DNA of 64,000 bases from Octopus sinensis (GCF_006345805.1 NW_021836179.1:1-64000); one strand, 5' to 3'; positions 11,791 to 64,000 are shown, numbered from the stretch's first letter. Notes: generated from the sequence alone by a model not told the origin. A program made the numbers and translations.

Positions 11791-11834
11791 TGATATATAT
11801 GTATATATGTTCATTTAAGAAACCTCATCATATA

Positions 11835-19130: not shown

Positions 19131-19424
19131 TGCAGTTCTACCAAGACTAGAATTGTTACCATTTCGCTTTGAGAAACGAATTTTCATAATTATTATGGAT
19201 TACCAAGTGATTTAATGGTGTTGTGATTTATTTCTTTACGGGAATAATTATCAACAGCTTCTACACGTGCTTCTAATTAAGACGAATCTAATTATATCAG
19301 ATGTAGTAATACCTCGTGTTCAGGTGAACGTTGATCTCTATGAATAACACGAAGCGACTTACATGATTTGTGATTTAATATTTCTCTTGATCACAGCTTT
19401 AGTTGGTTGATCCCTATTTTACAG

Positions 19425-19620
19425 GAAAGGGGGCAAAAAGCTTTGAATCGAGGAACTTTGCTCGCCCTTCTTCATATTTCATTTGTACCTTAGATCGAAA
19501 GCACGAATTGTTTGTATGCCCCTTTGTAGCAAATATTGTGCGCATTTCTACTATCCATGGTGGGAAAAACAAAGTGGATTTCAAGAAAGGATCCTGGTCA
19601 GATCAACAAGTATTCTAATG
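19425..19620 (+). other. 196-nt putative non-coding exon, one per unit
   Basis: TTTTACAG|G...AATG|GTAAGT. Copies at 27120-27315, 36179-36374, 42538-42733, 49369-49564, 56191-56386 and 63681-63876. Confidence 0.65.
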
Positions 19621-20655
19621 GTAAGTGAAAAAATATATCTACATAGCATTTGTTGTACACTTGTTAACGGAGGTGTGTGATATCTAAGACAAGAAACTGA
19701 ACCATAGGAGGTTAGTCTATATCTACAGACATTTGTCAGCTTTTTAAGTATTCCTGAAGACAAGCAGGAAGACCTCCCTCACAACGGCTTTCCTTTTGGT
19801 AAACGATATTTCCCCTTTTGACACCCGATTTGTGTAATTTTCTTTTGAGTCCTTTAATCGTTAATAATGTATATTTTGCCAGTAAATTTAGGGCATAACT
19901 ACAGAAATGCGGGATCCTTTCGGTTTGGGGAGTTACCAAAATTGAAATTGCAAAAATGTTTATATCATTGTTCTGTGACCCTAACCACATCTTTTCAAGG
20001 AGTTCTCAAAAATGAAGCCCCCAAAAATCAAAATATTATTCCCCGCCTAACCTGAACTCATCATATATATATATATATAGATAGATAGATAGAGATATGT
20101 ATATATGTGCGTGCATGAGTAATGTTACACAATGTTAAAGAGTAGTTGTAGTTTACAAATTCTTACATTTCACCCAATGTTATATGATGTCATTTGTTAA
20201 TTAATAAAGAAATATTGTAACATTTCTCTTTTGATCTCTCCTCTCTATCTAATTCTGTTTCTTTATTATTTCAGATTTACGGATGACATTGGCATCAAAG
20301 AAATGTTCTTTTATAATGAATACAATTTCAACATTTTTCATCTTTTAAAGTCTTGAGGAAAAGTTTACACAGAACGCATCTAAGCCTATTTCTATAAATC
20401 TTAGGTAGAAATTCAATGAAATGTTTGCTCTGAACTGAGATTAATAGCAACATTTTTCTATTTCATTAGCTGATGCTTTGCATTCTCATTACTCTTTGAT
20501 GACTTTCTAAATTTATAGCATCTTTAGATATCAGTGAAGTTTGCAGTGGAAATGTTTGTAAGGAATAAACTATAAAAAGAAGGATAAAGATAGGAGTAAA
20601 AGTTTAATGTGGTGAGAAAGGCCAAGGATTGGATCTATTTTGATTCCTCAGAGAA

Positions 20656-22275
20656 ATGCTGAAAAATATGCGAAAATCATTGTATCATTATGATATCTTT
20701 GATAAATCAGCCTCAAGAAGTGATGACTTAGAAAGACACAAGCGTACTCACACAGGAGAAGAACCGCTTGACTGTGATATCTGTGGTAAATTATTCACTA
20801 CAAGCAGTACTCTAACTACACACAGACACATTCACACAGGTGATAAATTGTTTCCCTGTGATGTCTGTGGTAAATTATTCACTGCAAGTAGTGCCTTAAT
20901 TATACACAAATGTGTTCATACAGGAGATAAACCGTATCCCTGTGATATCTGTGGTAAATCATTCACTACAATTAGTAGTGTGACTAGACACAGACGTATT
21001 CACACAGGAGAGAAACCATTTCACTGTAATATCTGTGGTAAAACATTTTCTGACGGAAGTGCCTTAATTGTACACAAACGTGTTCATACAGGAGAGACAC
21101 CATTTCACTGTAATATCTGTGGTAAATCATTCTCTGACAGAAGTGCCTTCATTGTACACAAACGTGTTCATACAGGAGAGAAACCATATCATTGTTATAT
21201 TTGTGGTAAATCTTTCACTCAGAGCACTTGCTTAGCTAAACACCGATGTTTTTATACAAGAGAGAAGCTATTTCATTGTGATACATGTGGCAAATCATTC
21301 TCTAGGAGCAATAACCTAACTAGCCACAGACATATTCATACAGGAGAGAAGCCATTTCATTGTGATGTCTGTGGTAAATCATTCTCTACAAGTGGTAACC
21401 TGTCTACACACAAACGCATTCACACAGGCGAAAATCTATTTCCGTGTGATATCTGTGGTAAATCATTCCCTCAAAGCAATCACTTAACTAGACACATACG
21501 TATTCATACAGGTGAGAAACCATATGAGTGTGATGTCTGTGGGAAATCATTCTCTGAAAGAAGTACCTTAATTAGTCACAAACGTAATCACACAGGAGAT
21601 AAGCCATTTCCGTGTGATATCTGTGGTAAATCATTCCCTACAAACAGTCATTTAACTAAACACAGACGTATTCACACAGGAGAGAAACCATTTCAATGTG
21701 ATATCTGTGGTAAATCATTTTCTAGAAACTGTGCTTTAACTTCTCACAAACGTGTTCATACAGGAGAGAAACCATTTCAATGTGATATCTGTGGTAAATC
21801 ATTCTCTGAAAGTACTACATTAATGAAACACGGACGTATTCACACAGGAGAGAAGCCATTTCACTGTGATATCTGTGGTAAATCATTCTCTCAAAATTGT
21901 CATTTAACTTCTCACAAACGTATTCATACAGGTGAGAGGCCATTTTGCTGTGATTTCTGTGGTAAGTCATTCTCTGACAGAAGTGCATTAATTATACATA
22001 AACGTGTTCATACAGGAGAGAAACCATATCACTGTGATGTCTGCAGTAAATCATTCTCTGAAAGTGCTACATTAAATAAACACAGGTGTATTCATACAGG
22101 AGAGAAACCATTTCACTGTGATATCTGTGGTAAATCATTCTCTCAAAATTGTCATTTAACATCTCACAAACGTATTCATACAGGAGAGAGGCCTTTTTGC
22201 TGTGATTTCTGTGGTAAATCATTCTCTCAGAAACGTTACTTAACTGCACACGTATCTATCCATACAAGAATTTGA
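20656..22275 (+). CDS. C2H2 zinc-finger protein, 19 finger repeats (539 aa), unit 1
   Basis: Intact ORF. Finger 1 lacks both Cys and finger 7 lacks the last His. Acceptor at 20274/20275. Confidence 0.93.
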
Positions 22276-23330
22276 CTGTATTATTTATCAAATGTCTTTG
22301 CAGCACACAGCAACCGACATTTTAAAACCCTTTCTCCTTGTGGGCATTGTCAGTAACTGATGAACCCTTGGTAACATTCATAATCATCAGGGTTCCTTTT
22401 TGAGGTATTGTTTATGATGCCAACCCTTTTTGTAAGCACTTACCTGGGATACACATAGTTATGCTGGGCACAGGTATTTGTTAGAATTGTGTGTAGAAAA
22501 TAATTTGTATAACCATAAATATTGCCACTTTAGAAGCACTAGATTAGACAATTGTGAGGAGTGGAAACAGTGATGTGCAGATAAATATAGTTGTGTGTGT
22601 AGCAGAATGTAGCAGACACGAGAGGCCCCTTGATATTAAAGCTGAAATCTAAAAGAGGAGAAACGTGTGAGGCAGTGCAGCATCATGAGAGCAGATGGTG
22701 GAGAAATCCAGGTGAACATCTTTTAGAGTAACTGGGTTTTTAGCAAGACACAATTTCTTGCATACTGAAAATATATACTCCATGAAGAAGATTGTGAAAT
22801 CATGTGGAGGTGACGTGGTTAAATAAATATGTCTTCAACACTGAAACTTGCTGACTTGGTTTTTATATGTACCTAAATATGTATGTTTGATTGCTTCTCG
22901 TTTATTAATTGCATCCAAGGTCTTTGTTGATGCTGGGCTTTGATCTTTGTTTGCTTGTTATTTCAGCTTGCTTCTTATTCCTCTGTGTCAATTTGCTTCT
23001 GATGAAGCAATTAGATGAACAAAGCTGCTCTTCTTTGTGTTTCTCTAGGCTGTGGGTTCGTTTAGTATCTCAGATAAAAAGTTGAATACATCGTTAGAGC
23101 ACATCCAACCCTACGCTTAATAAATTGAATGGGAAAAGCAGGCTCTTCATCCAGCTCCCCTTATTCTCCTCACCATTCCCATCACAGCCTGCATCACCTC
23201 CTGAACCCCACCCGACTCTCACTTTGGGCAGCTTCTATTTTATAATTTTATGCATGCGTGAAACATTAATAGAAGAAAACACTTTCATTTCATTTCTTAT
23301 TATGGGTCAGGGGAGGAGGTGGGGTTTTTT

Positions 23331-26030
23331 GAATGGGAGGAGGAGAGCCTTCCAAATGTTGACCCAGTAGAGGGACCAGCTACCCGAATAGACAGCTCCC
23401 TTGTAGTTAAGGCAATTAAGGATATGAAACCAGGTAAAGCCCCCGGCCCATCCGGAATCACTGCTGAGATGCTTAAAACAGCTGGCTATGTGGGCTATGG
23501 CCTAGTCACCCGCATTGTAAACCAGGTAGTTCTGAATGGAGTCATACCCATTGACTGGCGTAGCAGCACCATAGTCAACTGCTACAAGGGTAAAGGTGAT
23601 GCTCTAGATAGAAATAACTACAGGGGTATTAAACTGTTGGATCAGGTGATGAAGGTCACAGAGAGGGTCATAACCCTTCTCATTAGGGAGAGAATTTGCT
23701 TAGATGAGATGCAGTTCGGTTTTGTGCCAGGTAGAAGCACCACTGATGCTATATTCCTGGTCCGACAACTGCAGGAGAAGTACCTAGCTAAAGATAAACC
23801 CCTCTACATAGCTTTTGTGGACTTGGAGAAAGCCTTTGACAGGGTTCCTCGATCCCTTATCTGGTGGTCGATGCGGAAACTGGAGATTGACGAATGGCTA
23901 ATAAGGGCTGTACAGGCTCTATACAGAGAGGCTGTCAGCAAGGCTAGGATTGGCAAAGAATATAGTGAAGAACTCCGGGTAGAAGTAGGTGTACACCAAG
24001 GCTCAGCCCTAAGTCCCCTTTTATTCATGATAGTCCTCCAGGCAATAACAGAGGAATTCAAAACAGAATGCCCCTGGGAGCTCCTCTAAGCTGATGACCT
24101 GGCCCTCATAGCAGAATCACTACCGGAACTAGAAAAGAAATTTCGAGTGTGGAAGCAAGGGTTAGAATCAAAGGGCCTTAGAGTAAATGTAGCAAAGACC
24201 AAAGTTATAGTAAGCAGAAAGGCGAACTCATCACACACTCCCTCGGGCAGGTGGCCCTGCTCGATCTGAAGGAAAGGTGTAAGTAGAAACTCCATAAGAT
24301 GCACCCAATGTAAGCTATGGACGCATAAGAGGTGCAGCAACATCAAAGGGAAACTAACTGATAAGATAGCTTTCATGTGCGGCAGATGCACAGGGACAGT
24401 AGACATCACAGACACTCAGAAAACAGATTCCATCACACTCCAGGGAGAGAAACGAGAAGTAGTTGATAGTTTCCGCTACCTGGGTGACCAAGTTAGTAGT
24501 GGGGGTGGATACTCAGAGAGTATCACCACTAGAATACGAATAGCCTGGGCAAAGTTCAGAGAGCTCCTACCCCTACTGGCGACAAAGGGTCTCTCACTCA
24601 GAGCGAAAGGTAGATTGTATGATGCATGTGTGCGAACTGCCATGCTTCACGGTAGTGAAACATGGGCTGTGACTGCAGGGGATATGCGTAGACTTGAAAG
24701 AAATGAAGCTAGCATGATCCGCTGGATGTGTAATGTCAGTGTGCATGCACGACAGAGTGTAAGCACCCTGAGAGAAATGTTGGACATAAGAAGCATCAGA
24801 TGTGGTGTGCAAGAGCGACGCTTGCGATGGTATGGTAATGTGCTGCGGATGGATGAGGAGAGATGTGTGAAGATGTTCCACTCCCAAACAGTTGAAGGTA
24901 ACAGGGGGAGAGGTAGACCCAGGAAGACATGGGATGAGGTAGTCAAGCATGACCTCAGAGCGCTGGGCCTCACTGAGGCAATGGCGAAGGACCGAGACCT
25001 CTGGAGATATGCTGTGACTGCAAAGACCCGGGCTGCTTCCTGCGCCAGTTCCGCATAGCCCCTGCTCATTGAACGTACACTGGATCCCAGAATGTCCCGC
25101 TATGCTTGAGGAGACCCGTTGAGTCAAGCACATGAACATGAACATTGAAATAAATATCAATGGAAATAGTAGTTGTGATACCTGTTCCGGTGGCACATAA
25201 AAAGCATCATCCAAACGTGGCCGTAGCCAGCACCGCCTCGACTGGCTTCTGTGCCGGTGGCACATAAAAAGCACCATCCAAATGTGGCCGTAGCCAGCAC
25301 CTCCTCGACTGGCTTTTGTGCCGGTGGCACATAAAATGCACCATCCGAACGTGGCCGTAGCCAGCACCGTCTCGACTGGCTTCTGTGCCGGTGGCACATA
25401 AAAAGCACCATCCGAATGTGGCCATAGCCAGCACCTCCTCGACTGGCTTTTGTGCCGGTGGCACATAAAATGCACCATCCGAACGTGGCCATAGCCTGCA
25501 CCGCCTCGACTGGCTTCTGTGCCGGTGGCACATAAAAAGCACCATCCCAACGTGGCCGATGCTAGCACTGCATTGACTGGCTTCTGTGCCGGTAGCACAT
25601 AAAAAGTACCATCAAAACGTGGCCGTAGCCAGCACCGCCTCGAGTGGTTTCTGTGCCGGTGGCACATAAAAACACCATCCCAACGTGGCCGTAGCCAGCG
25701 CCGCCTCGACTGGCTTCTGTGCCAGTGGCACATAAAAAGCACCATCCGAACGTGGCTGTTGCCAGCGCCGCCTTGGCTGGCTTCCGTGCCGGTGGCACGT
25801 TAAAAGCTCCAACTGATCGTGGCCAATGCCGGACCGCCCCCCTGGCACCTGTGCGGGTGGCATGTAAAAAGCACCCACTACACTTGCGGAGTGGTTGGCA
25901 TTAGGAAGGACATCCAGCTGTAGAAACTGTGCCAGATCAGACTGGAGCCGGGTGCAGCCCCTAGCTTCCCAGACCCCGGTCGAACCGTCCAACGATGATG
26001 ATGATGGTGATGATGATGATGATGATGATG
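23331..26030 (+). mobile_element. 5'-truncated, inactivated RTE-clade LINE (RT, 3' UTR and (GAT)n tail)
   Basis: RT motifs KAPGPSG, NYRGIKLL, QFGF, FVDLEKAFDRV, GVHQGS.LSPLLF, (Y>stop)ADD and FRYLG. Stops at 24087 and 24267. No APE domain. About 80-bp direct repeats at 23250-23330 and 26028-26108. Confidence 0.93.
25189..25830 (+). repeat. 67-bp minisatellite in the RTE 3' UTR (10 unit starts)
   Basis: GGTGGCACATAAAAAGCACCATCCGAACGTGGCC... starts at 25189, 25256, 25323 ... 25791. Confidence 0.95.
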
Positions 26031-27682
26031 CATGCGAGAAACATTAATAGAAGAAAACACTTTCATTTCATTTCTTGTTATGGGTCAGGGGAGGAGATGG
26101 GGTTTTTTTTTTGTTTTTATTTTGTATATTTTGAAAAATTAGAATTTACATTTTTTTTTTGTTTTTTTCAGAATCGTAATCTCCTTATTTTTCTACAAAT
26201 TTCACCAGAAAAATTTTGTTTATAGTAGAAAATTTAAGAAATTGCGTGGGAAGATTAAAAATTTTTTAATGCAGATTGTTTTTGCAGGTTTGGAATCTCC
26301 GCACTCGATATCGTGGGTTCCTGTAAAAACAAAACCCAAAAAACATCGGAAAGAGGGTGCGGTCCATTGTCTTTCCCCACGCCGTAAACGGAACCCTTCC
26401 CCCTTTATTTCAGGATAAAGTAAAAAAACGAAGGAAAGGGATATGGGACTGAGATTTTGATGTTGGGGTTGTTGAAAGAATCTTTTCCAGAATCGAAATT
26501 TCCATGGCCTAAAAACATGGGATTCCGGAGAGAAAAAAAACAAAAAGGAATTTGAAAGCCGGGAAGGGCTCCGTTTCGATCTTCGCTATAGTTGAGGGTC
26601 GATGGTGGAAAAAGTTTGTCGACCCCTGTTAAAGGGTAGGGAACAGCACCTGCTGTGTTTCTAATCATATGTCCGTTTAATGAACAAACATACGATTATA
26701 TGCATTCTAATGCTAAGATGTAATGATGTCAGAAATATTTGGCTGCTATTTTTAGCAGGTTCAGTGACCATGCGCAGACACTCTTGTTGAGACGTAATTA
26801 CTATTTAGCTGGATGAGGTTTTTATCATTTACCTTGGCTGAGATGCAATTAAAGGTGTGAATTAATATAATTTTAACGTCTCTTCGTGTTATATTGGGGA
26901 CTTTTAATATATGTCACCGGTGTCGTTCAACCGCGGGAATAATTATCAACAGCTTCTACACGTGCTTCTAATTAAGACGAATCTAATTATATCAGATGTA
27001 GTAATACCTCGTGTTGAGGTGAACGTTGATCTCTATGAATAACACGAAGCGACTTACATAATTTGTGATTTAATATTTCTCTTGATCACAGCTTTAGTTG
27101 GTTGATCCCTATTTTACAGGAAAGGGGGCAAAAAGCTTTGAATCGAGGAACTTTGCTCGCCCTTCTTCATATTTCATTTGGACCTTAGATCGAAAGCACG
27201 AATTGTTTGTATGCCCCTTTGTAGCAAATATTGTGCGCATTTCTACTATCCATGGTGGGAAAAACAAACTGGATTTCAAGAAAGGATCCTGGTCAGATCA
27301 ACAAGTATTCTAATGGTAAGTGAAAAAATATATCTACATAGCATTTGTTGTACACTTGTTAACGGAGGTGTGTGATATCTAAGACAAGAAACTGAACCAT
27401 AGGAGGTTAGTCTATATCTACAGACATTTGTCAGCTTTTTAAGTATTCCTGAAGACAAGCAGGAAGACCTCCCTCACAACGGCTTTCCTTTTGGTAAACG
27501 ATATTTCCCCTTTTGACACCCGATTTGTGTAATTTTCTTTTGAGTCCTTTAATCGTTTAATAATGTATATTTTGCCAGTAAATTTAGGGCATAACTACAG
27601 AAATGCGGGATCCTTTCGGTTTGGGGAGTTACCAAAATTGAAATTGCAAAAATGTTTATATCATTGTTCTGTGACCCTAACC

Positions 27683-28586: not shown

Positions 28587-29867
28587 ATGCTGAAAAATTG
28601 TCGAAAATCATTGTATCGTTGTGATATCTGTGGTAAATCAACCACTAGAAGTGCTGCCTTAGATAGACACAAGCGTACTCACACAGGAGAGAAACCATAT
28701 CACTGTGATATTTGTGGTAAATCTTTCACTCAAAGCAATAACTTAACTATACACAAACTTGTTCATACAGGAGAGAAACCATATCACTGTGATATTTGTG
28801 GTAAATCATTCTCTCACAGAAGTGCCTTAACTAAACACAAACTTGTTCATACAGGAGAGAAGCCATTTCGCTGTGATATTTGTGGTAAATCCTTCACTAA
28901 AAGCAATGACTTAACTAAACACATACGTGTTCATACAGGAGAGAAGCAATTTCACTGTGATATCTGTGGTAAATCCTTCACTCAGAGTAATAGTTTAACT
29001 AGACACAGGCGTATTCACACAGGAGAAAAACCATTTCCCTGTGATGCCTGTGGTAAATCATTCTCTGACAAAAGTGCCTTAATTGTACATAAACGTGTTC
29101 ATACAGGGGAGAAACCATTTCGCTGTGATGTTTGTGGCAAATCATTCACTGCGAGTGGTGACTTAAATATACACAGACGTATTCACACAGGAGAGAATCC
29201 GTTTCACTGTAATATCTGTGGTAAATCATTCTCTCAAAGCAATCACTTAACTAATCACAAACTTGTTCATACAGGAGAGAAACCATACCACTGTGATATC
29301 TGTGGTAAATCATTCTCTCAAAATTGTCAATTAACTTATCACAAACGCATTCATACAGGAGAGAAACCATACCACTGTGATATCTGTGGTGAATCATTCT
29401 CTCAAAGCAATCACTTAACTAAACACAGACGTATTCACACAGGAGAGAAACCATTTCACTGTGATATCTGTGGTAAATCATTCTCTCAAAATTATCATTT
29501 AACTTCTCACAAACGGGTTCATACAGGAGAGAAACCATACCACTGTGATATCTGTGGTAAATCATTCTCTCAAAATTATCATTTAACTTCTCACAAACGG
29601 GTTCATACAGGAGAGAAACCATACCACTGTGATATCTGTGGTGAATCATTCTCTCAAAGTGATACTTTAAATAAACACAGGCGTATTCATACAGGAGAAA
29701 AGCCGTATCACTGTGATATCTGTGGTAAATCATTCTCACAAAATTGTCAATTAACTTCTCACAAACGTATTCATACAGGGGAAAAGCCATTTCACTGTGA
29801 TGTCTGTGGTAAATCATTCTCTCAAAATTGTCGTTTAACTTCTCACAAACATATTCATACAGGATAG
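28587..29867 (+). CDS. C2H2 zinc-finger protein type 1, 15 fingers (426 aa), unit 2
   Basis: Intact ORF ending HTG-TAG; fingers 11 and 12 are near-exact 84-bp duplicates. Confidence 0.93.
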
Positions 29868-31244
29868 AGGCCTTTTTGCTGTGATTTCTGTGGTAAATCA
29901 TTCTCTGAGAAACGTTACTTAATTGCACACGTATCTATCCATACAAGAATTTGACTGTATTATTTATGAAATGTCTTTACAGCACACAGCAACAGACATT
30001 TTAAAACCCTTTCTCCTTGTGGGCATTGTCAGTAAGTGATGAACCCTTGGTAACATTCATAATCATGCCAACCCTTTTTGTAAGCACTTACCTGGGATAC
30101 ACGTAGTTTTGCTGGGCACAGGTATTTGTTAGAATTGTGTGTAGAAAATAATTTGTATAACCATAAATATTGCCACTTTAGGAAGCACTAGATTAGACAA
30201 TTGTGAGGAGTGGAAACAGTGATGTGCAGATAAATATAGTTGTGTGTGTAGCAGACACGAGAGGCCCATTGATATTAAAGCTGAAATCTAAAAGAGGAGA
30301 AACGTGTGAGGCAGTGCAGCATCATGAGAGCAGATGGTGGAGAAATCCAGGTGAACATCTTTTAGAGTAACTGGGTTTTTAGCAAGACACAATTTCTTGC
30401 ATACTGAAAATATATACTCCATGAAGAAGATTGTGAAATCGTGTGGAGGTGACGTGGTTAAATAAATATGTCTTCAACACTGAAACTTGCTGACTTGGTT
30501 TTTATATGTACCTAAATATGTATGTTTGATTGCTTCTCGTTTATTAATTGCATCCAAGGTCTTTGTTGATGCTGGGCTTTGATCTTTGTTTGCTTGTTTA
30601 TTTCAGCTTGCTTCTTATTCCTCTGTGTCAATTTGCTTCTGATGAAGCAATTAGATGAACAAAGCTGCTCTTCTTTGTGTTTCTCTAGGCTGTGGGTTCG
30701 TTTAGTATCTCAGATATAAAGTTGAATACATCGTTAGAGCACATCCAACCCTACGCTTAATAAATCTTTCTGGTTTTGTGTCGAGATATTGAAAAGCTGT
30801 GGGCCCTGGAAATCCTAAACCGTTGCAGTATTGGATTCTTACCCAAGATGGAAAGTAGAAGGTGTTTGGTACGATGTAGTGGCGTTCAGTTGAGCTGTTT
30901 GTATAGATTTCATTACCAAATTTAGGGGTAGACCTTAAAAACAGTATATATGTATATACAACGTGCTTCTTACACTTTGCGTCATCCAAATCCACTCACA
31001 AGGCTTCAGCTGGCCCGAGGCTATAGTAGAAGAAACTTACCCAAGGTGCCAAGCAGTGGAACTGACCCGGGGAACTGTGTGATTGATAAGCAAGCGACTT
31101 ACCACACAATTTTATTTTTAAATGCTTGAAATTGTGTAGATTACAATTATATAGGAATTTGTTTGGGGTAAACACTACCTGGAGTAGGGGTGGGCAATTC
31201 AGAGACTTTGTGAAAACGTATGAGGAAATAAAGATGTGTGAATT

Positions 31245-32275: not shown

Positions 32276-32532
32276 CCCAAAAATCCAAGTTTTGTCTTTT
32301 TTCTCTTAGTGAAAATCATGCGGTTGTTAATATTGGAATTGAATGGGAAAAGCAGGCTCTTCATCCAGCTCCCCTTATTCTCCTCACCATTCCCATCACA
32401 GCCTGCACCCCACCCGACTCTCACTTTGGGCAGCTTCTATTTTATAATTTTATGCATGCGTGAAACATTAATAGAAGAAAACACTTTCATTTCATTTCTT
32501 ATTATGGGTCAGGGGAGGAGGTGGGGTTTTTT

Positions 32533-43363: not shown

Positions 43364-43783
43364 TGGCGATCTTTCATCTCTAGTAGACCTTTTCGTCGAT
43401 TTCTGTAAAAAAATCTTTTTTTTTACACATGGGCTTGCGGGAACTTTTGAAGTAATATACATACATATACACATACACCGAGTAAAAAATTTCAGTTATC
43501 TCTCTCTTTCACACATTACTCTCTCTGTCTCTTCACACACACTAACAGAAGCACTTCACTTACACAACATACTGCCTGTCTCCCACACCACATTAAACAC
43601 ACATATACATCAATGCTTGCCATGCACGGTAACTTCAAAAGAACTTCCCTCGTCATACAATCGCTTTCTCTTAGTCTCTTTCGCTCTCATTACTTCAAAA
43701 GTTCCCGCAAGCCCATATGTAAAAGAAAAAAAAAAATTTTACGGAAATCGACGGAAAGGTCTACTAGAGACGAAAGATCGCCA
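43364..43783. mobile_element. 420-bp MITE with about 90-bp terminal inverted repeats
   Basis: TGGCGATCTTTCATCTCTAGTAGACC...GGGAACTTTTGAAGTAAT versus ATTACTTCAAAAGTTCCC...GGTCTACTAGAGACGAAAGATCGCCA. Confidence 0.85.
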
Positions 43784-45915: not shown

Positions 45916-47330
45916 AGGCCTTTTCGCTGTGATTTCTGTGGTAAATCATTCTCTAGGAAACGTTACTTAACTGGACATGTATCTATCCATACAAGAATTT
46001 GACTGTATTATTTATCAAATGCCTTTGCAGCACACAGCAACAGACATTTTAAAACCCTTTCTCCTTGTGGGCATTGTCAGTAACTGATGAACCCTTGGTA
46101 ACATTCATAATCATCAGGGTTCCTTTTTGAGGTATTGTTAATGATGCCAACCCTTTTTGTAAGCACTTACCTGGGATACACATAGTTATGCTGGGCACAG
46201 GTATTTGTTAGAATTGTGTGTAGAAAATAATTTGTATAACCATAAATATTGCCACTTTAGGAAGCACTAGATTAGACAATTGTGAGGAGTGGAAACAGTG
46301 ATGTGCAGATATATATAGTTGTGTGTGTAGCAGAATGTAGCAGACACGAGAGGCCCATTGATATTAAAGCTGAAATCTAAAAGAGGAGAAACGTGTGAGG
46401 CAGTGCAGCATCATGAGAGCAGATGGTGGAGAAATCCAGGTGAACATCTTTTAGAGTAACTGGGTTTTTAGCAAGACACAATTTCTTGCATACTGAAAAT
46501 ATATACTCCATGAAGAAGATTGTGAAATCGTGTGGAGGTGACGTGGTTAAATAAATATGTCTTCAACACTGAAACTTGCTGACTTGGTTTTTATATGTAC
46601 CTAAATATGTATGTTTGATTGCTTCTCGTTTATTAATTGCATCCAAGGTCTTTGTTGATGCTGGGCTTTGATCTTTGTTTGCTTGTTTATTTCAGCTTGC
46701 TTCTTATTCCTCTGTGTCAATTTGCTTCTGATGAAGCAATTAGATGAACAAAGCTGCTCTTCTTTGTGTTTCTCTAGGCTGTGGGTTCGTTTAGTATCTC
46801 AGATAAAAAGTTGAATACGTCATTAGAGCACATCCAACCCTAAGCTTAATAAATCTTTCTGGTTTTGTGTCGAGATATTGAAAAGCTGAGGGCCCTGGAA
46901 ACCCTAAACCGTTGCAGTATTGGATTCTTACCCAAGATGGAAAGTCCAAGGTGTTTGGTATGATGTAGTGGCGTTCAGTCCAGGTGTTACTATAGGTTTC
47001 ATTATCAAAGTTAGGGGTAGACCTTAAAAACTGTATATATCTATATACAGCGGGCTTCTTACAGTTTCCGTCATCCAAATCCACAGACAAGGCTTCGGCT
47101 GGCCCGAGGCTATAGTAGAAGCTTACCCAAGGTGCCAAGCAGTGGAACTGAACCGGGGAACCATGTGATTGATAAGCAAGCTACTTACCACACAATTTTT
47201 TTATTAAATGCTTCAAATTGTGTAGATAACAATTATATAGGAATTTGTTGGGGTAAAACACAACCTGGAGTAGGGGTGGGCAATTCACAGATTTTGTGAA
47301 AACGTATGAGGAAATAAAGATGTGTGAATT

Positions 47331-51453: not shown

Positions 51454-52734
51454 ATGCTGAAAAATATGCGAAGATCATTGTATCGTTGTGATATCTATGG
51501 TAAATCAACCACTAGAAGTGATTTCTTAGATAGACACAAGCGTACTCACACAGGAGAAAAACCATATCACTGTGATATCTGTGGTAAATCATACACTCAA
51601 AGCTATGACTTAACTAAACACAAATGTATTCATTCCAGAGAGAAGCCATTTCGCTGTGATATTTGTGGTAAATCCTTCACACAAAGCAATAACTTAACTA
51701 ATCACAAACGTGTTCATACAGGAGAGAAGCCATTTCACTGTGATATTTGTGGTAAATCCTTCACTCAAAGCGGTGGCTTAACTAATCACAAACGTGTTCA
51801 TACAGGAGAAAAACCGTTTCAGTGTGATATCTGTGGTAAATCATTCTCTCAAAATTGTGTGTTAACTACTCACAAGCGTCTTCACACAGGAGAGAAACCA
51901 TATCACTGTGATATTTGTGGTAAATCATTCTCTAAAAATTGTCATTTAACTCCTCACAAACGTATTCATACAGGAGAGAAACCATATCACTGTGATGTCT
52001 GTGGTAAATCATTCTCTCACAGAAGTGCCTTAATTATACACAAACGTGTTCATACAGGAGAGAAGCCATTTTGCTGTGATATTTGTGGTAAATCCTTCAC
52101 TCAGGGCAATGACTTAACTAAACACAAACGTGTTCATACAGGAGAGAAGCCATCTCGCTGTGATATTTGTGGTACATCATTCTCTCACAGAAGTGCCTTA
52201 ATTATACACAAACGTGTTCATACAGGAGAGAAGCCATTTCGCTGTGATATTTGTGGTAAATCCTTCACTCAAAGCGGTGGCTTAACTTCTCACAAACGTG
52301 TTCATACCGGGGAGAAACCATATCACTGTGATATCTGTGGTAAATCATTCTCTAAAAACAGTAGCCTAACTACACACAAACGCATTCACACAGGGGAAAA
52401 ACCATTTCACTGTGATGTCTGTGGGAAATCATTCTCTGTAAGCAGTAGTTTAATTGGACACAAACGAATTCATACAGGAGAAAAGCCTTATCACTGTGAT
52501 ATCTGTGATAAATCATTCTCTCGAAGCAATCACTTAGCTAAACACATATGTATTCATACAGGAGTGAAACCATATCAGTGTGATGTCTGTGGGAAAACAT
52601 TCTCTGATAGAAGTGCCTTAACTAGACACAGACGTATTCATACAGGAGAGAAACCATTTCACTGTGATATCTGTGGTAAATCATTCTCTCGAAATTATCG
52701 ATTAACTTCTCACAAACGTATTCATACAGGATAG
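51454..52734 (+). CDS. C2H2 zinc-finger protein type 2, 15 finger repeats (426 aa), unit 5
   Basis: Intact ORF; differs from unit 4 by K7R and by C>Y in finger 1. Confidence 0.93.
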
Positions 52735-54149
52735 AGGCCTTTTCGCTGTGATTTCTGTGGTAAATCATTCTCTAGGAAACGTTACTTAACTGGACATGTA
52801 TCTATCCATACAAGAATTTGACTGTATTATTTATCAAATGCCTTTGCAGCACACAGCAACAGACATTTTAAAACCCTTTCTCCTTGTGGGCATTGTCAGT
52901 AACTGATGAACCCTTGGTAACATTCATAATCATCAGGGTTCCTTTTTGAGGTATTGTTAATGATGCCAACCCTTTTTGTAAGCACTTACCTGGGATACAC
53001 ATAGTTATGCTGGGCACAGGTATTTGTTAGAATTGTGTGTAGAAAATAATTTGTATAACCATAAATATTGCCACTTTAGGAAGCACTAGATTAGACAATT
53101 GTGAGGAGTGGAAACAGTGATGTGCAGATATATATAGTTGTGTGTGTAGCAGAATGTAGCAGACACGAGAGGCCCATTGATATTAAAGCTGAAATCTAAA
53201 AGAGGAGAAACGTGTGAGGCAGTGCAGCATCATGAGAGCAGATGGTGGAGAAATCCAGGTGAACATCTTTTAGAGTAACTGGGTTTTTAGCAAGACACAA
53301 TTTCTTGCATACTGAAAATATATACTCCATGAAGAAGATTGTGAAATCATGTGGAGGTGACGTGGTTAAATAAATATGTCTTCAACACTGAAACTTGCTG
53401 ACTTGGTTTTTATATGTACCTAAATATGTATGTTTGATTGCTTCTCGTTTATTAATTGCATCCAAGGTCTTTGTTGATGCTGGGCTTTGATCTTTGTTTG
53501 CTTGTTTATTTCAGCTTGCTTCTTATTCCTCTGTGTCAATTTGCTTCTGATGAAGCAATTAGATGAACAAAGCTGCTCTTCTTTGTGTTTCTCTAGGCTG
53601 TGGGTTCGTTTAGTATCTCAGATAAAAAGTTGAATACGTCATTAGAGCACATCCAACCCTAAGCTTAATAAATCTTTCTGGTTTTGTGTCGAGATATTGA
53701 AAAGCTGAGGGCCCTGGAAACCCTAAACCGTTGCAGTATTGGATTCTTACCCAAGATGGAAAGTCCAAGGTGTTTGGTATGATGTAGTGGCGTTCAGTCC
53801 AGGTGTTACTATAGGTTTCATTATCAAAGTTAGGGGTAGACCTTAAAAACTGTATATATCTATATACAGCGGGCTTCTTACAGTTTCCGTCATCCAAATC
53901 CACAGACAAGGCTTCGGCTGGCCCGAGGCTATAGTAGAAGCTTACCCAAGGTGCCAAGCAGTGGAACTGAACCGGGGAACCATGTGATTGATAAGCAAGC
54001 TACTTACCACACAATTTTTTTATTAAATGCTTCAAATTGTGTAGATAACAATTATATAGGAATTTGTTGGGGTAAAACACAACCTGGAGTAGGGGTGGGC
54101 AATTCACAGATTTTGTGAAAACGTATGAGGAAATAAAGATGTGTGAATT

Positions 54150-58283: not shown

Positions 58284-59983
58284 ATGCTGAAAAATACTCG
58301 AAAATCATTGTATCGTTGTGATATCTGTGGTAAATCAACCACTAGAAGTGCTGCCTTAGATAGACACAAGCGTACTCACACAGGAGAGAAACCATATCAC
58401 TGTGATATTTGTGGTAAATCTTTCACTCAAAGCAATAACTTAACTATACACAAACTTGTTCATACAGGAGAGAAACCATATCACTGTGATATTTGTGGTA
58501 AATCATTCTCTCACAGAAGTGCCTTAACTAAACACAAACTTGTTCATACAGGAGAGAAGCCATTTCGCTGTGATATTTGTGGTAAATCCTTCACTAAAAG
58601 CAATGACTTAACTAAACACATACGTGTTCATACAGGAGAGAAGCAATTTCACTGTGATATCTGTGGTAAATCCTTCACTCAGAGTAATAGTTTAACTAGA
58701 CACAGGCGTATTCACACAGGAGAAAAACCATTTCCCTGTGATGTCTGTGGTAAATCATTCTCTGACAAAAGTGCCTTAATTGTACATAAACGTGTTCATA
58801 CAGGGGGAAACCATTTCGCTGTGATGTTTGTGGCAAATCATTCATTGCAAGTGGTGACTTAAATATACACAGACGTATTCACACAGGAGAGAATCCGTTT
58901 CACTGTGATATCTGTGGTAAATCATTCTCTCGAAGCAATCACTTAACTAATCACAAACTTGTTCATACAGGAGAGAAACCATACCACTGTGATATCTGTG
59001 GTAAATCATTCTCTCAAAATTGTCAATTAACTTATCACAAACGCATTCATACAGGAGAGAAACCATACCACTGTGATATCTGTGGTGAATCATTCTCTCA
59101 AAGCAATCACTTAACTAAACACAGACGTATTCACACAGGAGAGAAACCATTTCACTGTGATATCTGTGGTAAATCATTCTCTCAAAATTATCATTTAACT
59201 TCTCACAAACGGGTTCATACAGGAGAGAAACCATACCACTGTGATATCTGTGGTGAATCATTCTCTCAAAGTGATACTTTAAATAAACACAGGCGTATTC
59301 ATACAGGAGAAAAGCCGTATCACTGTGATATCTGTGGTAAATCATTCTCACAAAATTGTCAATTAACTTCTCACAAACGTATTCATACAGGGGAAAAGCC
59401 ATTTTGCTGTGATGTCTGTGGTAAATCATTCTCTCGAAGCAATCACTTAACTAATCACAAACTTGTTCATACAGGAGAGAAACCATACCACTGTGATATC
59501 TGTAGTAAATCATTCTCTCAAAATTGTCAATTAACTTATCACAAACGCATTCATACAGGAGAGAAACCATACCACTGTGATATCTGTGGTGAATCATTCT
59601 CTCAAAGCAATCACTTAACTAAACACAGACGTATTCACACAGGAGAGAAACCATTTCACTGTGATATCTGTGGTAAATCATTCTCTCAAAATTATCATTT
59701 AACTTCTCACAAACGGGTTCATACAGGAGAGAAACCATACCACTGTGATATCTGTGGTGAATCATTCTCTCAAAGTGATACTTTAAATAAACACAGGCGT
59801 ATTCATACAGGAGAAAAGCCGTATCACTGTGATATCTGTGGTAAATCATTCTCACAAAATTGTCAATTAACTTCTCACAAACGTATTCATACAGGGGAAA
59901 AGCCATTTTGCTGTGATGTCTGTGGTAAATCATTCTCTCAAAATTGTCGTTTAACTTCTCACAAACGTATTCATACAGAATAG
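58284..59983 (+). pseudogene. C2H2 zinc-finger gene type 1, 20 fingers if repaired (566 aa); 1-nt deletion at about 58806, unit 6
   Basis: ACAGGGGGAAACCA versus ACAGGGGAGAAACCA in units 2 and 3. As written it yields 192 aa with 6 fingers; the shifted frame stays open to TAG 59981-59983. Confidence 0.82.
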
Positions 59984-61360
59984 AGGCCTTTTTGCTGTGA
60001 TTTCTGTGGTAAATCATTCTCTGAGAAACGTTACTTAATTGCACACGTATCTATCCATACAAGAATTTGACTGTATTATTTATGAAATGTCTTTACAGCA
60101 CACAGCAACAGACATTTTAAAACCCTTTCTCCTTGTGGGCATTGTCAGTAAGTGATGAACCCTTGGTAACATTCATAATCATGCCAACCCTTTTTGTAAG
60201 CACTTACCTGGGATACACGTAGTTTTGCTGGGCACAGGTATTTGTTAGAATTGTGTGTAGAAAATAATTTGTATAACCATAAATATTGCCACTTTAGGAA
60301 GCACTAGATTAGACAATTGTGAGGAGTGGAAACAGTGATGTGCAGATAAATATAGTTGTGTGTGTAGCAGACACAAGAGGCCCATTGATATTAAAGCTGA
60401 AATCTAAAAGAGGAGAAACGTGTGAGGCAGTGCAGCATCATGAGAGCAGATGGTGGAGAAATCCAGGTGAACATCTTTTAGAGTAACTGGGTTTTTAGCA
60501 AGACACAATTTCTTGCATACTGAAAATATATACTCCATGAAGAAGATTGTGAAATCGTGTGGAGGTGACGTGGTTAAATAAATATGTCTTCAACACTGAA
60601 ACTTGCTGACTTGGTTTTTATATGTACCTAAATATGTATGTTTGATTGCTTCTCGTTTATTAATTGCATCCAAGGTCTTTGTTGATGCTGGGCTTTGATC
60701 TTTGTTTGCTTGTTTATTTCAGCTTGCTTCTTATTCCTCTGTGTCAATTTGCTTCTGATGAAGCAATTAGATGAACAAAGCTGCTCTTCTTTGTGTTTCT
60801 CTAGGCTGTGGGTTCGTTTAGTATCTCAGATATAAAGTTGAATACATCGTTAGAGCACATCCAACCCTACGCTTAATAAATCTTTCTGGTTTTGTGTCGA
60901 GATATTGAAAAGCTGTGGGCCCTGGAAACCCTAAACCGTTGCAGTATTGGATTCTTACCCAAGATGGAAAGTCCAAGGTGTTTGGTACGATGTAGTGGCG
61001 TTCAGTCCAGGTGTTACTATAGGTTTCATTACCAAATTTAGGGGTAGACCATAAAAGCTGTATATATCTATATACAGCGGGCTTCTTACAGTTTCCGTCA
61101 TCCAAATCCACTCACAAGGCTTCAGCTGGCCAGAGGCTATAGTAGATGAAACTTCCCCAAGGTGCCAAGCATTGGAACTGAACCGGGGAACCATGTGATT
61201 GATAAGCAAGCTACGTACCACACAATTTTCTTTTTAAATGCTTCAAATTGTGTAGATTATAATTATATAGGAATTTGCTGGGGGTAAACACTACCTGGAG
61301 TAGGGGTGGGCAATTCAGAGACTTTGTGAAAACGTATGAGGAAATAAAGATGTGTGAATT

Positions 61361-61766
61361 AGCCAAAACTCCTGTCCCCTCATCCTGAAAATGTTTCTCA
61401 CAAGTGGTAGAAATAGACCAGATGGTCTTGTCATCTGTGCCTGGGTTAGAGGTAAGGTGCCTCATTTGGGATGCCACACTCTGCTACTCCTTTGCTCCTT
61501 CTCACATCCTGGATGCTGCAGTTAATGGCAGGGTCACTGCTTCCGTAGCCAAATGGAAGAAAACCCTGAGGTATCGGGACGTGACAGTGAACTATCACTT
61601 CCACCTTGTGGTGTTTGAGACATTCAGAGGGACTAGGCCATTATCCATGAAGTTCTTGTCAACATTGGCAGGTGATGCCCGTGTGGGTGCATGGTTTTTC
61701 TTAACACCTGAGCCTCGCTGTCACCTGTAGTAATACTGGGAGGATGCTGGATTGCTTCAGTAGGTT
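61361..61766 (+). mobile_element. CRE-like endonuclease fragment (unit 6 copy)
   Basis: Paralog of 31245-31650. Confidence 0.55.
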
Positions 61767-64000
61767 CTATCAAACCTTGTGGGGTGCAACCAGCTGCTGT
61801 GATAAAAGAAATACCTCCAAATATGCTGCAAATCCCTTATTTTGGTTTGGAAAAGTGGGAGGACACCCCCATCTTGGAATCGTTGGAAAATTATTTTTTT
61901 CATTGAATTAATTCCTCTGACCTAATATGCTACAAAACCTTTTTTTGGGGTCGGAAAAACGGGATGGAGGGAGCTGGAAGACTTGGAATGTTCACCCCCA
62001 CTACCATTGATCTTTTTATCCACAAAGTTTTCAGTAAGGAAAAAAAATTGGATTTTTTTGCGTGGAATCAAGTACCCTGACCTCCTAATATGCTGCAAAT
62101 CCCTTATTGTAGTTAACAAAAAATTGGGGGCCTTCCCCACTTTTTCATGCAGGTGAAAAGATTAGTGGGGTTATGGGCAATATTTCTGAGGCTTCCACCT
62201 CACTCCACCCCGTTTTACGGACCCCAAAAAGAGTTTTGTAGCATATTAGGTCACAGGAATTCATTCAAGAAAAAAAACCCCACAAAAATATCCAATGATT
62301 CCGAAATGGGAAGGGGTGACCCTATCCTCTTGTTTTCCAAACCAATATAAGGGACGTGAAGCATCTTATTAGGTCAGGGTACTTGATTCCACCCCAAAAA
62401 TCCAAGTTTTGTCTTTTTTCTCTTAGTGAAAATCATGCGGTTGTTAATATTGGAATTGAATGGAAAAAGCAGGCTCTTCATCCAGCTCCCCTCTCTACCT
62501 CCCCTTATTCTCCTCACCATTCCCATCACAGCCTGCATCACCTCCTGCACCCCACCCGACTCTCACGTTGTCCAGCTTCTATTTTATAATTTTATGCATG
62601 CCTGAAACATTAATAGAAGAAAACACTTTCATTTCATTTCTTGCTATGGGTCGGGGGAGGAGGTGGGGTTTTTGTTTTTGTTTTGTATATTTTGAAAAAT
62701 TAGAATTTACATTTTTTTTTTGTTTTTTTCAGAATCGTAATCTCCTTATTTTTCTACAAATTTCACCAGAAAAATTTTGTTCTTAGTAGAAAATTTAAGA
62801 AATTGCGTTGGAGATTAAAAAATTTTTAATGCAGATTGTTTTTGCAGATTTGGAATCTCCGCACTCGATATCGTGGGTTCCTGTAAAAACAAAACCCAAA
62901 AAACATCAGAAAGAGGGTGCGGTCCATTGTCTTTCCCCACGCCGTAAACGGAACTCTTCCCCCTTTATTTCAGGGAAAAGTAAAAGAACGAAGGAAAGGG
63001 ATATGGGACTGAAATTTTGATGTTGGGATTGTTGAAAGAATCTTTTCCAGAATCGAAATTTCCATGGCCTAAAAACATGGGATTCCGGAGAAAAGAAAAA
63101 CAAAAAGGAATTTGAAAACCGGGAAGGGCTCCGCGTCGATCTTTGCTATAGTTGAGGGTCGATGGTGGAAAAAGTTTGGCGACCCCTGATAAAGACGTAG
63201 GGAACAGCACCTGCTGTGTTTCTAATCATATGTCCGTTTAATGAACAAACATACGATTATATGCATTCTAATGCTAAGATGTAATTATGTCAGAAATATT
63301 TGGCTGCTATTTTTAGCAGGTTCAGTGACCATGCGCAGACACTCTTGTTGAGACGTAATTACTATTTAGCTGGATGCGGTTTTTATCATTTACCTTGGCT
63401 GAGATGCAATTAAAGGTGTGAATTAATATAATTTTAACGTCTCTTCGTGTTATATTGGGGACTTTTAATATATGTCACCGGTGTCGTTCAACCGCGGGAA
63501 TAATTATCAACAGCTTCTACACGTGCTTCTAATTAAGACGAATCTAATTATATCAGATGTAGTAATACCTCGTGTTCAGGTGAACGTTGATCTCTATGAA
63601 TAACACGAAGCGACTTACATGATTTGTGATTTAATATTTCTCTTGATCACAGCTTTAGTTGGTTGATCCCTATTTTACAGGAAAGGGGGCAAAAAACTTT
63701 GAATCGAGGAACTTTGCTCGCCCTTCTTCATATTTCATTTGTACCTTAGATCGAAAGCACGAATTGTTTGTATGCCCCTTTGTAGCAAATATTGTGCGCA
63801 TTTCTACTATCCATGGTGGGAAAAACAAACTGGATTTCAAGAAAGGATCCTGGTCAGATCAACAAGTATTCTAATGGTAAGTGAAAAAATATATCTACAT
63901 AGCATTTGTTGTACACTTGTTAACGGAGGTGTGTGATATCTAAGACAAGAAACAGAACCATAGGAGGTTAGTCTATATCTACAGACATTTGTCAGCTTTT

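Follow-up and report, generated by a model that had tools for sequence, protein, structure and literature searches.

How can tandem copies of a gene share almost the same leaders and flanks, yet encode different sets of DNA-recognition helices? The question is raised by a 64,000-nucleotide stretch of Octopus sinensis DNA (GCF_006345805.1 NW_021836179.1:1-64000; hereafter, the window), in which a sequence-only reading had seen a recombination-driven diversification system: flanks and scaffold kept uniform, helices turning over as the array expands, possibly tracking the transposable elements (TEs) around it. We asked what changes between the copies, and on which time-scale.

Structure of the array and its products

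Self-BLAST confirmed the proposed tandem array: it is head-to-tail, with its left edge exactly at 19239, the same left junction in seven copies, and a right side extending past the window end (Table 1). The window sequence contains no Ns. The array consists of six units (U1-U6) of 6.4-9.1 kb, each with one large finger exon, and 506 bp of a seventh; the units differ in length because of large indels, as mapped in the MAFFT alignment. The probable plan of a unit is a short, conserved block at the 5' end holding a putative promoter and small first exon, an intron, the finger exon and a spacer. The putative intron measures 1-1.7 kb and is followed by a large exon of 14-19 fingers and a spacer with transposon debris. 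Block P1, the start of the unit, holds a candidate first exon of 64 nt (ATG...AATG, followed directly by GTAAGT), which would splice in frame to a conserved AG acceptor located 2 nt 5' of the ORF ATG.

Table 1. Coordinates of the array, its units and neighbouring genes within the window.
Feature	Position	Strand	Details
Tandem array	19239..64000	+	Self-BLAST >=88% identity, MAFFT of units, indel map
Left junction CGGGAATAATT...	19239, 26934, 35993, 42352, 49183, 56005, 63495		Identical in 7/7 copies
U1	19239-26933		7695 bp
U2	26934-35992		9059 bp
U3	35993-42351		6359 bp
U4	42352-49182		6831 bp
U5	49183-56004		6822 bp
U6	56005-63494		7490 bp
Seventh unit	63495-64000		First 506 bp
Block P1	19239..19964	+	Most uniform part of unit, 0-1% divergence, seven copies
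Candidate first exon, U1-U4	19557-19620, 27252-27315, 36311-36374, 42670-42733
Candidate first exon, U5, U6, seventh copy	49501-49564, 56323-56386, 63813-63876
U1 finger exon	20656..22275	+	539-codon ORF, 19 repeats; Pfam zf-C2H2 E=2e-98; fingers 1 and 7 degenerate
U2 finger exon, type 1	28587..29954	+	ORF 28587-29867, 15 fingers, then TAG; vestigial 16th finger 29874-29954, 3' of TAG
U3 finger exon, type 1	37645..38928	+	ORF 37645-38841, 14 fingers, TAG, vestigial last finger; Pfam match
U4 finger exon, type 2	44635..46002	+	ORF 44635-45915, 15 fingers, TAG, vestigial 16th finger; Pfam zf-C2H2 E=6.5e-86
U5 finger exon, type 2	51454..52821	+	Finger region one base off U4; leader Lys to Arg, 51473; finger 1 Cys to Tyr at zinc ligand, 51497
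U6 finger exon, type 1	58284..60070	+	21 repeats
640-bp extra segment, putative intron, U4	43301..43940	+
Other copies of extra segment	U5 50123-50760; U6 56945-57583		Absent from U1-U3
5'-truncated retroelement fragment, U1 spacer	23326..26108	+	Pfam RVT_1 E=2.5e-28; reverse transcriptase, then 67-bp tandem repeats
Same retroelement insertion, U2 spacer	32528..35166	+	1.6% diverged from U1 copy
Gene A leader block	7056..7475	+	Neighbouring subfamily, outside main array
Gene A	7354-8705	+	Frameshifted in finger 4
Gene B	9773-11065	+	Leader block 9474-9894
Gene C	17075-15930	-	Leader block 17374-16955, inverted

The finger exons encode tandem Krüppel-type C-X2-C-X12-H-X3-H fingers, with 14-17 stretches matching Pfam zf-C2H2 (E=6.5e-86 to 2e-98) and a zf-H2C2_2 match of E=1e-124. 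Fingers follow each other at a strict 84-nt spacing (TRF: period 84, 14-20 copies), and 38-44 of 45 fingers agree with the HTGEKP consensus of the H/C link. Counted in DNA, U1 to U6 hold 19, 16, 15, 16, 16 and 21 finger repeats, which corrects the earlier figure of 14-20; the proposed division into three finger sets, namely U1 alone, U2/U3/U6 (type 1) and U4/U5 (type 2), was upheld. The locus thus presents as a lineage-specific tandem ZNF expansion: close paralogs in tandem, each with 15-21 finger repeats, in differing numbers.

No KRAB domain (PF01352) was detected in the ORFs or in the U4 open frames of at least 55 aa on both strands, a search that short or distant exons could escape. PR/SET (PF00856/PF21549) had no match in the ORFs or open frames of the unit, where KRAB, SCAN, BTB and SET were likewise absent from every open frame, and neither database search nor exact look-up returned a close protein relative. 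The encoded proteins most likely bind DNA in a sequence-specific manner and have no recognisable effector domain.

Recent copies keep their helices and change in finger number

The youngest copies were compared within each set. Over their 6.8 kb, U4 and U5 are separated by 13 substitutions and a few indels (about 0.2%), and U2, U3 and U6 are 0.4-1% apart. Inside one finger set we counted 5-12 base differences, only one of them at a contact codon, and the other variation consists of whole-finger duplications; contact changes among recent copies thus amount to one in about 60 finger comparisons, with otherwise identical helices. Copies less than 1% apart differ instead by in-register whole-finger duplications and disabling mutations. 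U2 has one QNYHL finger more than U3, and U6 carries an internal 6-finger (504-bp) duplication, with fingers 8-13 repeated as 14-19. On the recent time-scale, recognition helices are therefore copied unchanged while finger number changes, which contradicts the proposed helix turnover during expansion.

Broken copies stand among intact ones. Five of the six units have intact ORFs of 398-539 codons. In U2-U6, a TAG replaces the Glu codon of an HTGERP linker and cuts off the last finger, which is translated only in U1, where the ORF reads through. A 1-bp deletion near 58806 in U6 (GGGGAGAAACC to GGGGGAAACC) shifts the frame, so that the ORF ends at 58862, after six fingers; U6 is probably a pseudogene, or else the deletion is a sequencing error. 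U3 and U6 differ by about nine nonsynonymous and two synonymous changes. The zinc-ligand mutation in U5 and the frameshift in gene A add to this damage.

Flanks are mosaics

Leaders and flanks differ by 0-5% between units, in agreement with the few percent initially noted, and the nearest neighbour varies by segment along the unit. Among 81 informative flank sites we found 829 incompatible pairs, corresponding to a four-gamete minimum of 19 exchanges. In the quartet U3/U6/U4/U2, ten consecutive sites pair U6 with U4 in 56206-57674, after which U6 pairs with U2/U3. U6 is a chimera of a U4/U5-like 5' part and a U2/U3-like remainder, with the switch near 57680-58040. Together with the in-register finger duplications, these mosaic flanks and the chimeric unit bear out the idea that recombination shapes the array.

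Two additional segments were traced through the units. The extra intron segment of U4-U6 ends in 158 bp that repeat the end of block P1, and its presence marks U6 as chimeric. The retroelement copies in U1 and U2 have the same 5' junction, carry a long target duplication and are absent from U3-U6; their closest reverse-transcriptase relatives are marine sequences of 55-77% identity. TEs within the array travelled with the units when these were copied and are not independent insertions, so they are uninformative on TE targeting.

A neighbouring subfamily of three genes shows a related picture. The 420-bp leader of genes A, B and C is 99-100% identical, with six variable sites in the three genes, whereas their finger arrays are only about 72% identical (range ~70-78%) and upstream of the leader no alignment is possible. 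As gene C is inverted, its near-identical leader excludes unequal crossover and implies gene conversion.

Inner fingers are more diverged than their surroundings

Between sets, low, flank-like divergence (~2.5%) is limited to three fingers, the first and the final two, hereafter the arm fingers. Compared position by position, the first finger is 95% identical and the final two are 93% and 95% identical, but identity falls to 85% or less once finger 2 is reached and, coming from the other end, to 76% at the third-last finger and beyond. Inner fingers lack collinearity between sets, with best matches of 82-93% identity; orthology was assigned here by reciprocal best matches of 84-nt units, a small sample. 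Exact matches have a median length of 13-42 nt in the arrays versus about 120 nt in the flanks. Scaffold positions differ at 18/252 in the best inner pairs versus 42/1665 in the flanks (p=6e-4), and at 4/189 in the arm fingers, the same level as the flanks. Scaffold dS is correspondingly about 0.2 in inner and 0.05 in arm fingers, and silent divergence between the best-matching inner fingers is about 4-7 times that of the flanks. The inner arrays of the three sets are neither rearrangements of one another nor mosaics of fingers found within the window. Their silent and scaffold sites are several-fold more diverged than the flanks, so the inner sets must either predate the flanks or have been imported.

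Related helices do recur at differing array positions, as the sequence-only reading had noted: HRSAL, QSNNL, xxNDL, QNCxL and DxSAL do so with 87-94% nucleotide identity. The claim in that reading of a homogenised scaffold and linkers holds for protein only: in DNA, identity at scaffold codons is 81-84% within an array and no different (82-84%) between arrays. Silent sites differ by about 0.32 among fingers, mean pairwise finger identity is 74-79%, and only 2-3% of pairs within an array reach 90%. The exception is U6 (15/210 pairs), owing to its recent 6-finger duplication.

Contact residues

Entropy peaks at helix positions -1, +2, +3 and +6, with a contact pN of 0.55 compared with a scaffold pS of 0.32 and pN of 0.12. 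The anticipated excess of change at contact positions was found in the arm fingers, where orthology is clear: contact codons differ at 9/36 nt versus 5/216 elsewhere (p=1e-5), about 10-fold, and at 6/24 versus 2/144 when only translated fingers are counted. Reciprocal-best type 1/type 2 pairs gave a contact dN of 0.30 against a scaffold dS of 0.13, again in small samples, and scaffold dN/dS is 0.25-0.5 across sets. The excess in a few arm fingers is what diversifying selection for DNA-binding specificity could produce. However, the last finger, untranslated 3' of the common TAG, likewise has helix-biased differences between sets, a poor fit to simple selection on the present proteins.

Which history explains the array?

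The array is real, yet a fairly ordinary tandem cluster of multi-zinc-finger genes. We regard it as reasonably probable that it arose by birth-and-death evolution, with leaders and flanks exchanged around older finger cassettes by gene conversion or unequal crossover. Unequal homologous exchange copies and reshuffles whole units, as shown by the near-identity within U4/U5 and U2/U3/U6, the U6 chimera and the retroelement in the first two spacers only. On this recent time-scale helices are carried over intact, with finger number shifting by in-register 84-bp slippage or exchange (+1 in U2, +6 in U6) and occasional breakage (the U6 frameshift, Cys to Tyr in U5). The genealogy of the finger sets differs from that of the surrounding DNA and is older: the leader and flanks, together with the arm fingers, coalesce at about 2.5%, whereas inner best matches are 7-18% different. 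The likeliest cause would be that conversion or unequal crossover homogenises the leaders and flanks of old paralogs and halts where the arrays become too different; alternatively, conversion tracts may have replaced the inner cassettes. The A/B/C subfamily gives the same pattern, only sharper. Contacts -1, +2, +3 and +6, judged from few fingers, gain amino-acid changes roughly 10-fold faster than adjacent DNA.

Import of cassettes into young duplicates leaves the same pattern within the window as homogenised flanks around old cassettes. The units would then be young (~2.5%), and the inner blocks of two of the three sets would have been converted from zinc-finger genes outside the window, with the leader and first finger on one side and the last two fingers and 3' flank on the other acting as homology arms. 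The sharp identity drop on the inner side of finger 1 and of the penultimate finger fits such arms, as does their flank-like scaffold divergence; the inner fingers, being no mosaic of window fingers, would place the donor elsewhere, and conversion is clearly active in the A/B/C leaders. However, a donor was not found, the other zinc-finger genes in the window being only 72-83% identical, and at least two long conversions (~1.1 kb) across poorly matched repeats are needed. As its predictions equal those of flank homogenisation, present data do not favour import, which we consider unlikely. That cassettes are swapped through homology arms to yield new DNA-binding specificities, in at least two subfamilies (the main array and A/B/C) and loosely like antigenic-variation cassettes, is more doubtful still. 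Recent neutral duplicates decaying into pseudogenes, with helix differences that are historical rather than functional, would account for the U6 frameshift, the lost U5 zinc ligand, the premature TAG of U2-U6, the two degenerate fingers of U1, the nonsynonymous bias between U3 and U6 and the broken gene A; this is improbable given the scaffold dN/dS, the ORFs intact in five of six units and a contact-codon excess unlike neutral decay. PRDM9-like diversification in place, by finger shuffling and contact replacement during expansion with scaffold and flanks kept uniform, draws on the in-register gains in U2 and U6, the related helices at differing positions and the contact enrichment in arm fingers. 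We hold it to be very unlikely, since helices are identical in young copies, scaffold DNA is equally diverged within and between arrays, unlike in mouse Prdm9, best inner fingers exceed the flanks several-fold in silent divergence and no inner array is a rearrangement of another. Finally, U4/U5, possibly with more units, could be haplotypes or a mis-expanded repeat: their differences are at a level typical of alleles, and assemblies are prone to error in tandem repeats of 6-9 kb. The gap-free sequence, the 1-5% distances, large unit-specific indels and TE insertion that set the other units apart from alleles of one unit, and a near-identity that continues into the start of U6, as expected of real serial duplication, make a partial assembly artefact highly improbable.

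The pattern is therefore that of ordinary unequal crossover and gene conversion in a multigene family, rather than of a dedicated diversification system. As it stands, the locus adds one case to a well-described phenomenon, albeit a small and clean one, in which three usually blurred time-scales of zinc-finger cluster growth are separated: very recent unit copying with unchanged helices, recent finger-number change and decay, and set divergence that is older or imported. Near-identical leaders and flanks around divergent arrays do not equate to young duplicates that diverged fast, which bears on the dating of ZNF expansions and on dN/dS tests assuming one genealogy per gene. Cassette exchange, if true genome-wide, would be an added mechanism for new binding specificities.

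Comparison with known systems

In multigene families such as MHC and immunoglobulin V genes, concerted evolution keeps the binding region diverse while conversion homogenises flanks and framework; the array here has no immune function, and its recognition segment is an internal tandem repeat. Mammalian KRAB-ZNF clusters (Emerson & Thomas 2009, PMC2604467; Tadepally et al. 2008, PMC2443715) are likewise tandemly duplicated, with 28-residue fingers and TGEKP linkers, and share the finger-number variation, helix-contact changes, some gene conversion and broken copies among intact ones; it is established that recent poly-ZF paralogs change in finger number and are under selection at contact residues (PMC2604467). 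In contrast, no open frame of a unit here gave a KRAB, SCAN, BTB or SET match, the leader is only about 10-35 residues, and the opposition of near-identical leader and flank to divergent arrays is unusually sharp. PRDM9 (Oliver et al. 2009, PMC2779102) also has 84-bp repeats, in-register finger gain and loss and a contact excess. In mouse Prdm9, all finger pairs are more than 90% identical in DNA and differ almost only at contact codons (PMC2779102); with an average of 74-79%, the fingers here fall below that threshold, and the suggested analogy fails for want of this defining nucleotide-level homogenisation of repeats. The octopus gene is, moreover, multi-copy and without PR/SET, not a single hypervariable locus. 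Zebrafish FiNZ-ZNF genes form hundreds of tandem paralogs, some clades of which are under positive selection at contacts (Wells et al. 2023, PMC10547256), and similarly join a conserved N-terminal leader to variable finger arrays. The genes here have no FiNZ domain, and their conserved part reaches into non-coding DNA at 99-100% identity, a sign of gene conversion and not of constraint on the protein. Octopus ZNFs are predicted to bind TEs (Wells et al. 2023, PMC10547256), TE targeting being a proposal. Cephalopod C2H2 expansions are large, recent, lineage-specific multi-finger families in a repeat-rich genome (Holzinger et al. 2025, PMC12513265); the cephalopod papers cover family trees and expression, whereas the mosaic structure of each unit is described here.

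Organization of the tandem array

The locus is a genuine and well-resolved cluster of tandem zinc-finger genes whose history is mosaic. The window, with a GC content of ~0.39 and 0 Ns, is AT-rich and contains many C2H2 zinc-finger ORFs. Self-comparison at a cut-off of at least 88% identity revealed a head-to-tail array that starts exactly at 19239 and continues past the window end. The same junction, followed by CGGGAATAATTATCAACAGC, is common to seven sites (the unit starts in the table), which therefore delimit six complete units, U1-U6, and 506 bp of a seventh. Multiple alignment attributed the variation in unit length to a few large indels, listed together with the other features of the window.

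Coordinates and properties of features in the window (indel segments from the multiple alignment of units)
Feature	Position	Strand	Size	Remarks
U1	19239-26933		7695 bp	19 finger repeats; finger set in U1 only
U2	26934-35992		9059 bp	16 finger repeats; type 1
U3	35993-42351		6359 bp	15 finger repeats; type 1
U4	42352-49182		6831 bp	16 finger repeats; type 2
U5	49183-56004		6822 bp	16 finger repeats; type 2
U6	56005-63494		7490 bp	21 finger repeats; type 1
Seventh unit	from 63495		506 bp	partial
Candidate first exon	19557-19620 and homologous position per unit		64 nt	ATG…AATG, then canonical donor GTAAGT
Last finger (xKRYL helix) 3' of TAG	U2 29868-29954; U3 38842-38928; U4 45916-46002; U5 52735-52821; U6 59984-60070			
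Indel segment			222 bp	missing in U1
Indel segment			640 bp	U4-U6 only; final 158 bp duplicate the end of the block before it
Inverted repeat pair in 640-bp segment	43364-43456; 43689-43783		~95 bp each	89% identity, ~230 bp between; MITE-like
Indel segment			31 bp	in U1, U4, U5
Indel segment			1.57 kb	missing in U1
Indel segment			267 bp	in U2, U3, U6
Retroelement fragment			2.6-2.8 kb	U1 and U2 only
GC-rich tandem repeats, 3' part of retroelement	25182-25875 (U1); 34387-34860 (U2)		67-bp period	10.4 copies in U1, fewer in U2
Gene A	7354-8705	+		second zinc-finger subfamily, upstream of array
Gene B	9773-11065	+		second zinc-finger subfamily, upstream of array
Gene C	17075-15930	-		second zinc-finger subfamily, upstream of array
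Leader block of genes A, B, C	7056-7475; 9474-9894; 17374-16955 (inverted)		420 bp	99-100% identical
Zinc-finger gene, CEICGK.F fingers	2247-3648	-		different type; fingers across three reading frames
SINE-like repeat	1605-2206; 11830-12216; 13378-13825; 14786-15209; fragment 30945-31108		~180-440 bp	80-94% identity; tandem dimer at 1605-1963
Satellite-like tandem repeat	18077-18683		169-bp period	just upstream of array; 3.6 copies, 97% matches
Repeat related to satellite-like repeat	4368-4920		187 bp	~76% identity to it

Each unit carries one long plus-strand exon of 84-bp finger repeats (TRF period 84; Pfam zf-C2H2, E=1e-84 to 1e-98). Finger comparison bore out the three finger sets named by the sequence-only reading, namely that of U1, type 1 (U2, U3 and U6) and type 2 (U4 and U5). 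While its description was largely right, it had missed several features of the ORFs: a 1-bp deletion near 58806 stops the U6 ORF after six fingers; a TAG replaces the linker Glu codon before the last finger in U2-U6, cutting that finger off and leaving U1 as the only unit that reads through it; a zinc ligand of finger 1 in U5 is changed from Cys to Tyr; and two fingers are degenerate in U1.

The unit is most uniform in its first 726 bp (0-1% divergence across seven copies), which include the candidate first exon; this exon would encode MVGKT[K/N]WISRKDPGQINKYSN. A single AG acceptor, 2 nt 5' of the ATG of the ORF, is conserved across all units, and the candidate exon would splice to it in frame, ahead of the finger ORF. 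Neither the ORFs nor the open frames of at least 55 aa in a TE-free unit encode a KRAB, SCAN, BTB or SET domain, and an effector domain elsewhere in the unit was rejected for want of a match. Vertebrate ZNFs dominated the matches to a full-length ZNF protein query, with a best identity of ~52-60%; nine window proteins had no exact database match, and scanning the window for tRNAs and Rfam families returned no RNA gene.

Repeats within and around the array

The retroelement fragment of U1 and U2 consists of a reverse transcriptase (Pfam RVT_1, E=2.5e-28), whose ORF has its best database matches at 55-77% in marine sequences, followed by the 67-bp tandem repeats. U1 and U2 share exactly the same 5' junction, and the insertion has a long target duplication. 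The element was inserted once and then duplicated together with its unit; the TEs of the array are not independent young insertions. The GC-rich repeats also give long, spurious minus-strand ORFs. ARAGORN and Rfam detected no tRNA in the copies of the SINE-like repeat; the repeat at 1605-2206 is tRNA-SINE-like and may resemble octopod SINEs. The three-frame spread of the CEICGK.F gene suggests introns or decay.

Recombination and recent copying

Divergence per segment revealed that the nearest neighbour of a unit shifts along its length: U4, U5 and U6 cluster in the first 1.6 kb, U2, U3 and U6 in the leader, array and proximal 3' flank, U3 and U6 farther 3', and U1 and U2 around the common retroelement. 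Ten consecutive informative sites at 56206-57674 unite U6 with U4, and 3' of 57674 U6 tracks U2/U3 in both pairwise divergence and shared indels. U6 is thus a recombinant, its 5' sites joining U4 and its later part following U2/U3. In a four-gamete test, 829 pairs failed among 81 informative flank sites, which requires at least 19 exchanges or recurrent mutations. Recombination among the units is therefore well supported.

Over 6.8 kb, 13 substitutions and a few indels separate U4 from U5, a near-identity that extends into the start of U6; the finger regions of U4 and U5 differ by one base. The fingers of U2, U3 and U6 differ at 5-12 bases across ~1.26 kb, of which a single one falls in a contact codon (position -1 of U6 finger 8, Gln to Arg). 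The remaining variation concerns whole fingers, with one extra QNYHL finger in U2 and an internal six-finger duplication (504 bp) in U6, the two copies of which differ at 3 codons (4 nt). Given so few contact changes among recent copies, recognition helices were copied faithfully during visible array growth; finger number changes and some copies break. Helix turnover during array expansion, and with it in-place, PRDM9-like turnover as a diversification 'system', is therefore not borne out.

Origin of the divergent finger sets

Comparison of type 1 (U3) with type 2 (U4) by position gave nucleotide identities of 95% for the first finger and of 93% and 95% for the final two (together, the arm fingers). 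Towards the interior of the array, identity drops to 85% or less, beginning at finger 2, and to 76%, beginning at the third-last finger. The inner fingers between the arms have best matches in another set that are only 82-93% identical and non-collinear, with U3 fingers 3, 4 and 9 pairing with U4 fingers 7, 3 and 6, respectively. The possibility that type-2 fingers are mosaics recently assembled from type-1 or U1 fingers was rejected, since the median maximal exact match is 13-42 nt between sets versus ~120 nt in the flanks. Scaffold (non-helix) positions differ at 18/252 in the best inner pairs versus 42/1665 in the leader and 3' flank (p=6e-4), while arm-finger scaffolds (4/189) are at flank level; scaffold dS is ~0.2 in inner pairs and 0.05 in the arms. 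As the differences are spread along the whole inner finger, helix-only micro-conversion was rejected as their origin. The contrast between inner fingers and arms or flanks shows that the inner arrays differ in genealogy from the surrounding DNA, the finger sets being the older. Two possibilities would account for this. Gene conversion, or unequal crossover on repeated occasions, may have homogenized leaders, arms and flanks among old paralogs, exchange ending where the arrays diverge; alternatively, paralogs beyond the window may have donated inner cassettes by conversion.

A similar arrangement is seen in genes A, B and C. Their leader block starts at a polypyrimidine/AG site, spans ~300 bp of non-coding leader and extends into the first codons; only six of its positions vary among the three genes. 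Identity between their finger arrays is 63-83% in 100-bp alignment windows (typically ~70-78%), and the DNA farther upstream is unalignable. Purifying selection was rejected as the cause of the leader identity, the blocks being mostly non-coding and lying beside arrays saturated at silent sites. Unequal crossover cannot explain this identity because gene C is inverted; gene conversion restricted to the leader is implied by the sequence arrangement. The leader of the main array is distantly homologous to the block (58%), and the 56-aa leader of the A/B/C subfamily yielded no homologue candidate in a protein search. Gene A has three fingers in frame before finger 4 is interrupted by a stop (near 7745), and from 7719 its array proceeds in another frame; it is either a frameshifted copy or affected by a sequencing error. 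Identical leaders versus divergent arrays, sharp in two subfamilies, are the one feature worth genome-wide pursuit.

Contact residues and comparison with known systems

The sequence-only reading had proposed a check for nonsynonymous excess at contact positions, and an excess is seen. In the arm fingers, a small sample with clear orthology, types 1 and 2 differ at 9/36 nt of the contact codons (-1, +2, +3, +6) versus 5/216 elsewhere (p=1e-5), or at 6/24 versus 2/144 (p=1e-4) without the untranslated last finger. Reciprocal-best pairs, again a small sample, gave a contact dN of 0.30, a scaffold dS of 0.13 and a scaffold dN of 0.033. Amino-acid entropy over 45 distinct fingers is highest at the same four positions (2.6-3.1 bits), with a contact pN of 0.55, a scaffold pS of 0.32 and a scaffold pN of 0.12. 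Such a pattern, here from small samples, is what diversifying selection usually leaves in poly-ZF paralogs (PMC2604467; PMC10547256).

Beyond the TAG, the last finger of U2-U6 still looks intact, and its between-set differences fall mainly in the helix. This might be explained if conversion carried the TAG from unit to unit only after the helix had changed, or if some isoform still includes the finger in its translation; chance could also account for the helix bias.

Scaffold codon identity is 81-84% within arrays versus 82-84% between arrays; the homogenized scaffold of the sequence-only reading thus holds for the protein, which is conserved, and not for the DNA. The cephalopod C2H2 literature (PMC12513265; PMC10547256) provides context rather than evidence on this locus. 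In mouse Prdm9, every finger is >90% identical to the others in its array (PMC2779102), whereas here only 2-3% of finger pairs within an array reach at least 90% identity. The proposed analogy with PRDM9 dynamics therefore fails on its defining feature, because finger DNA is not homogenized here.
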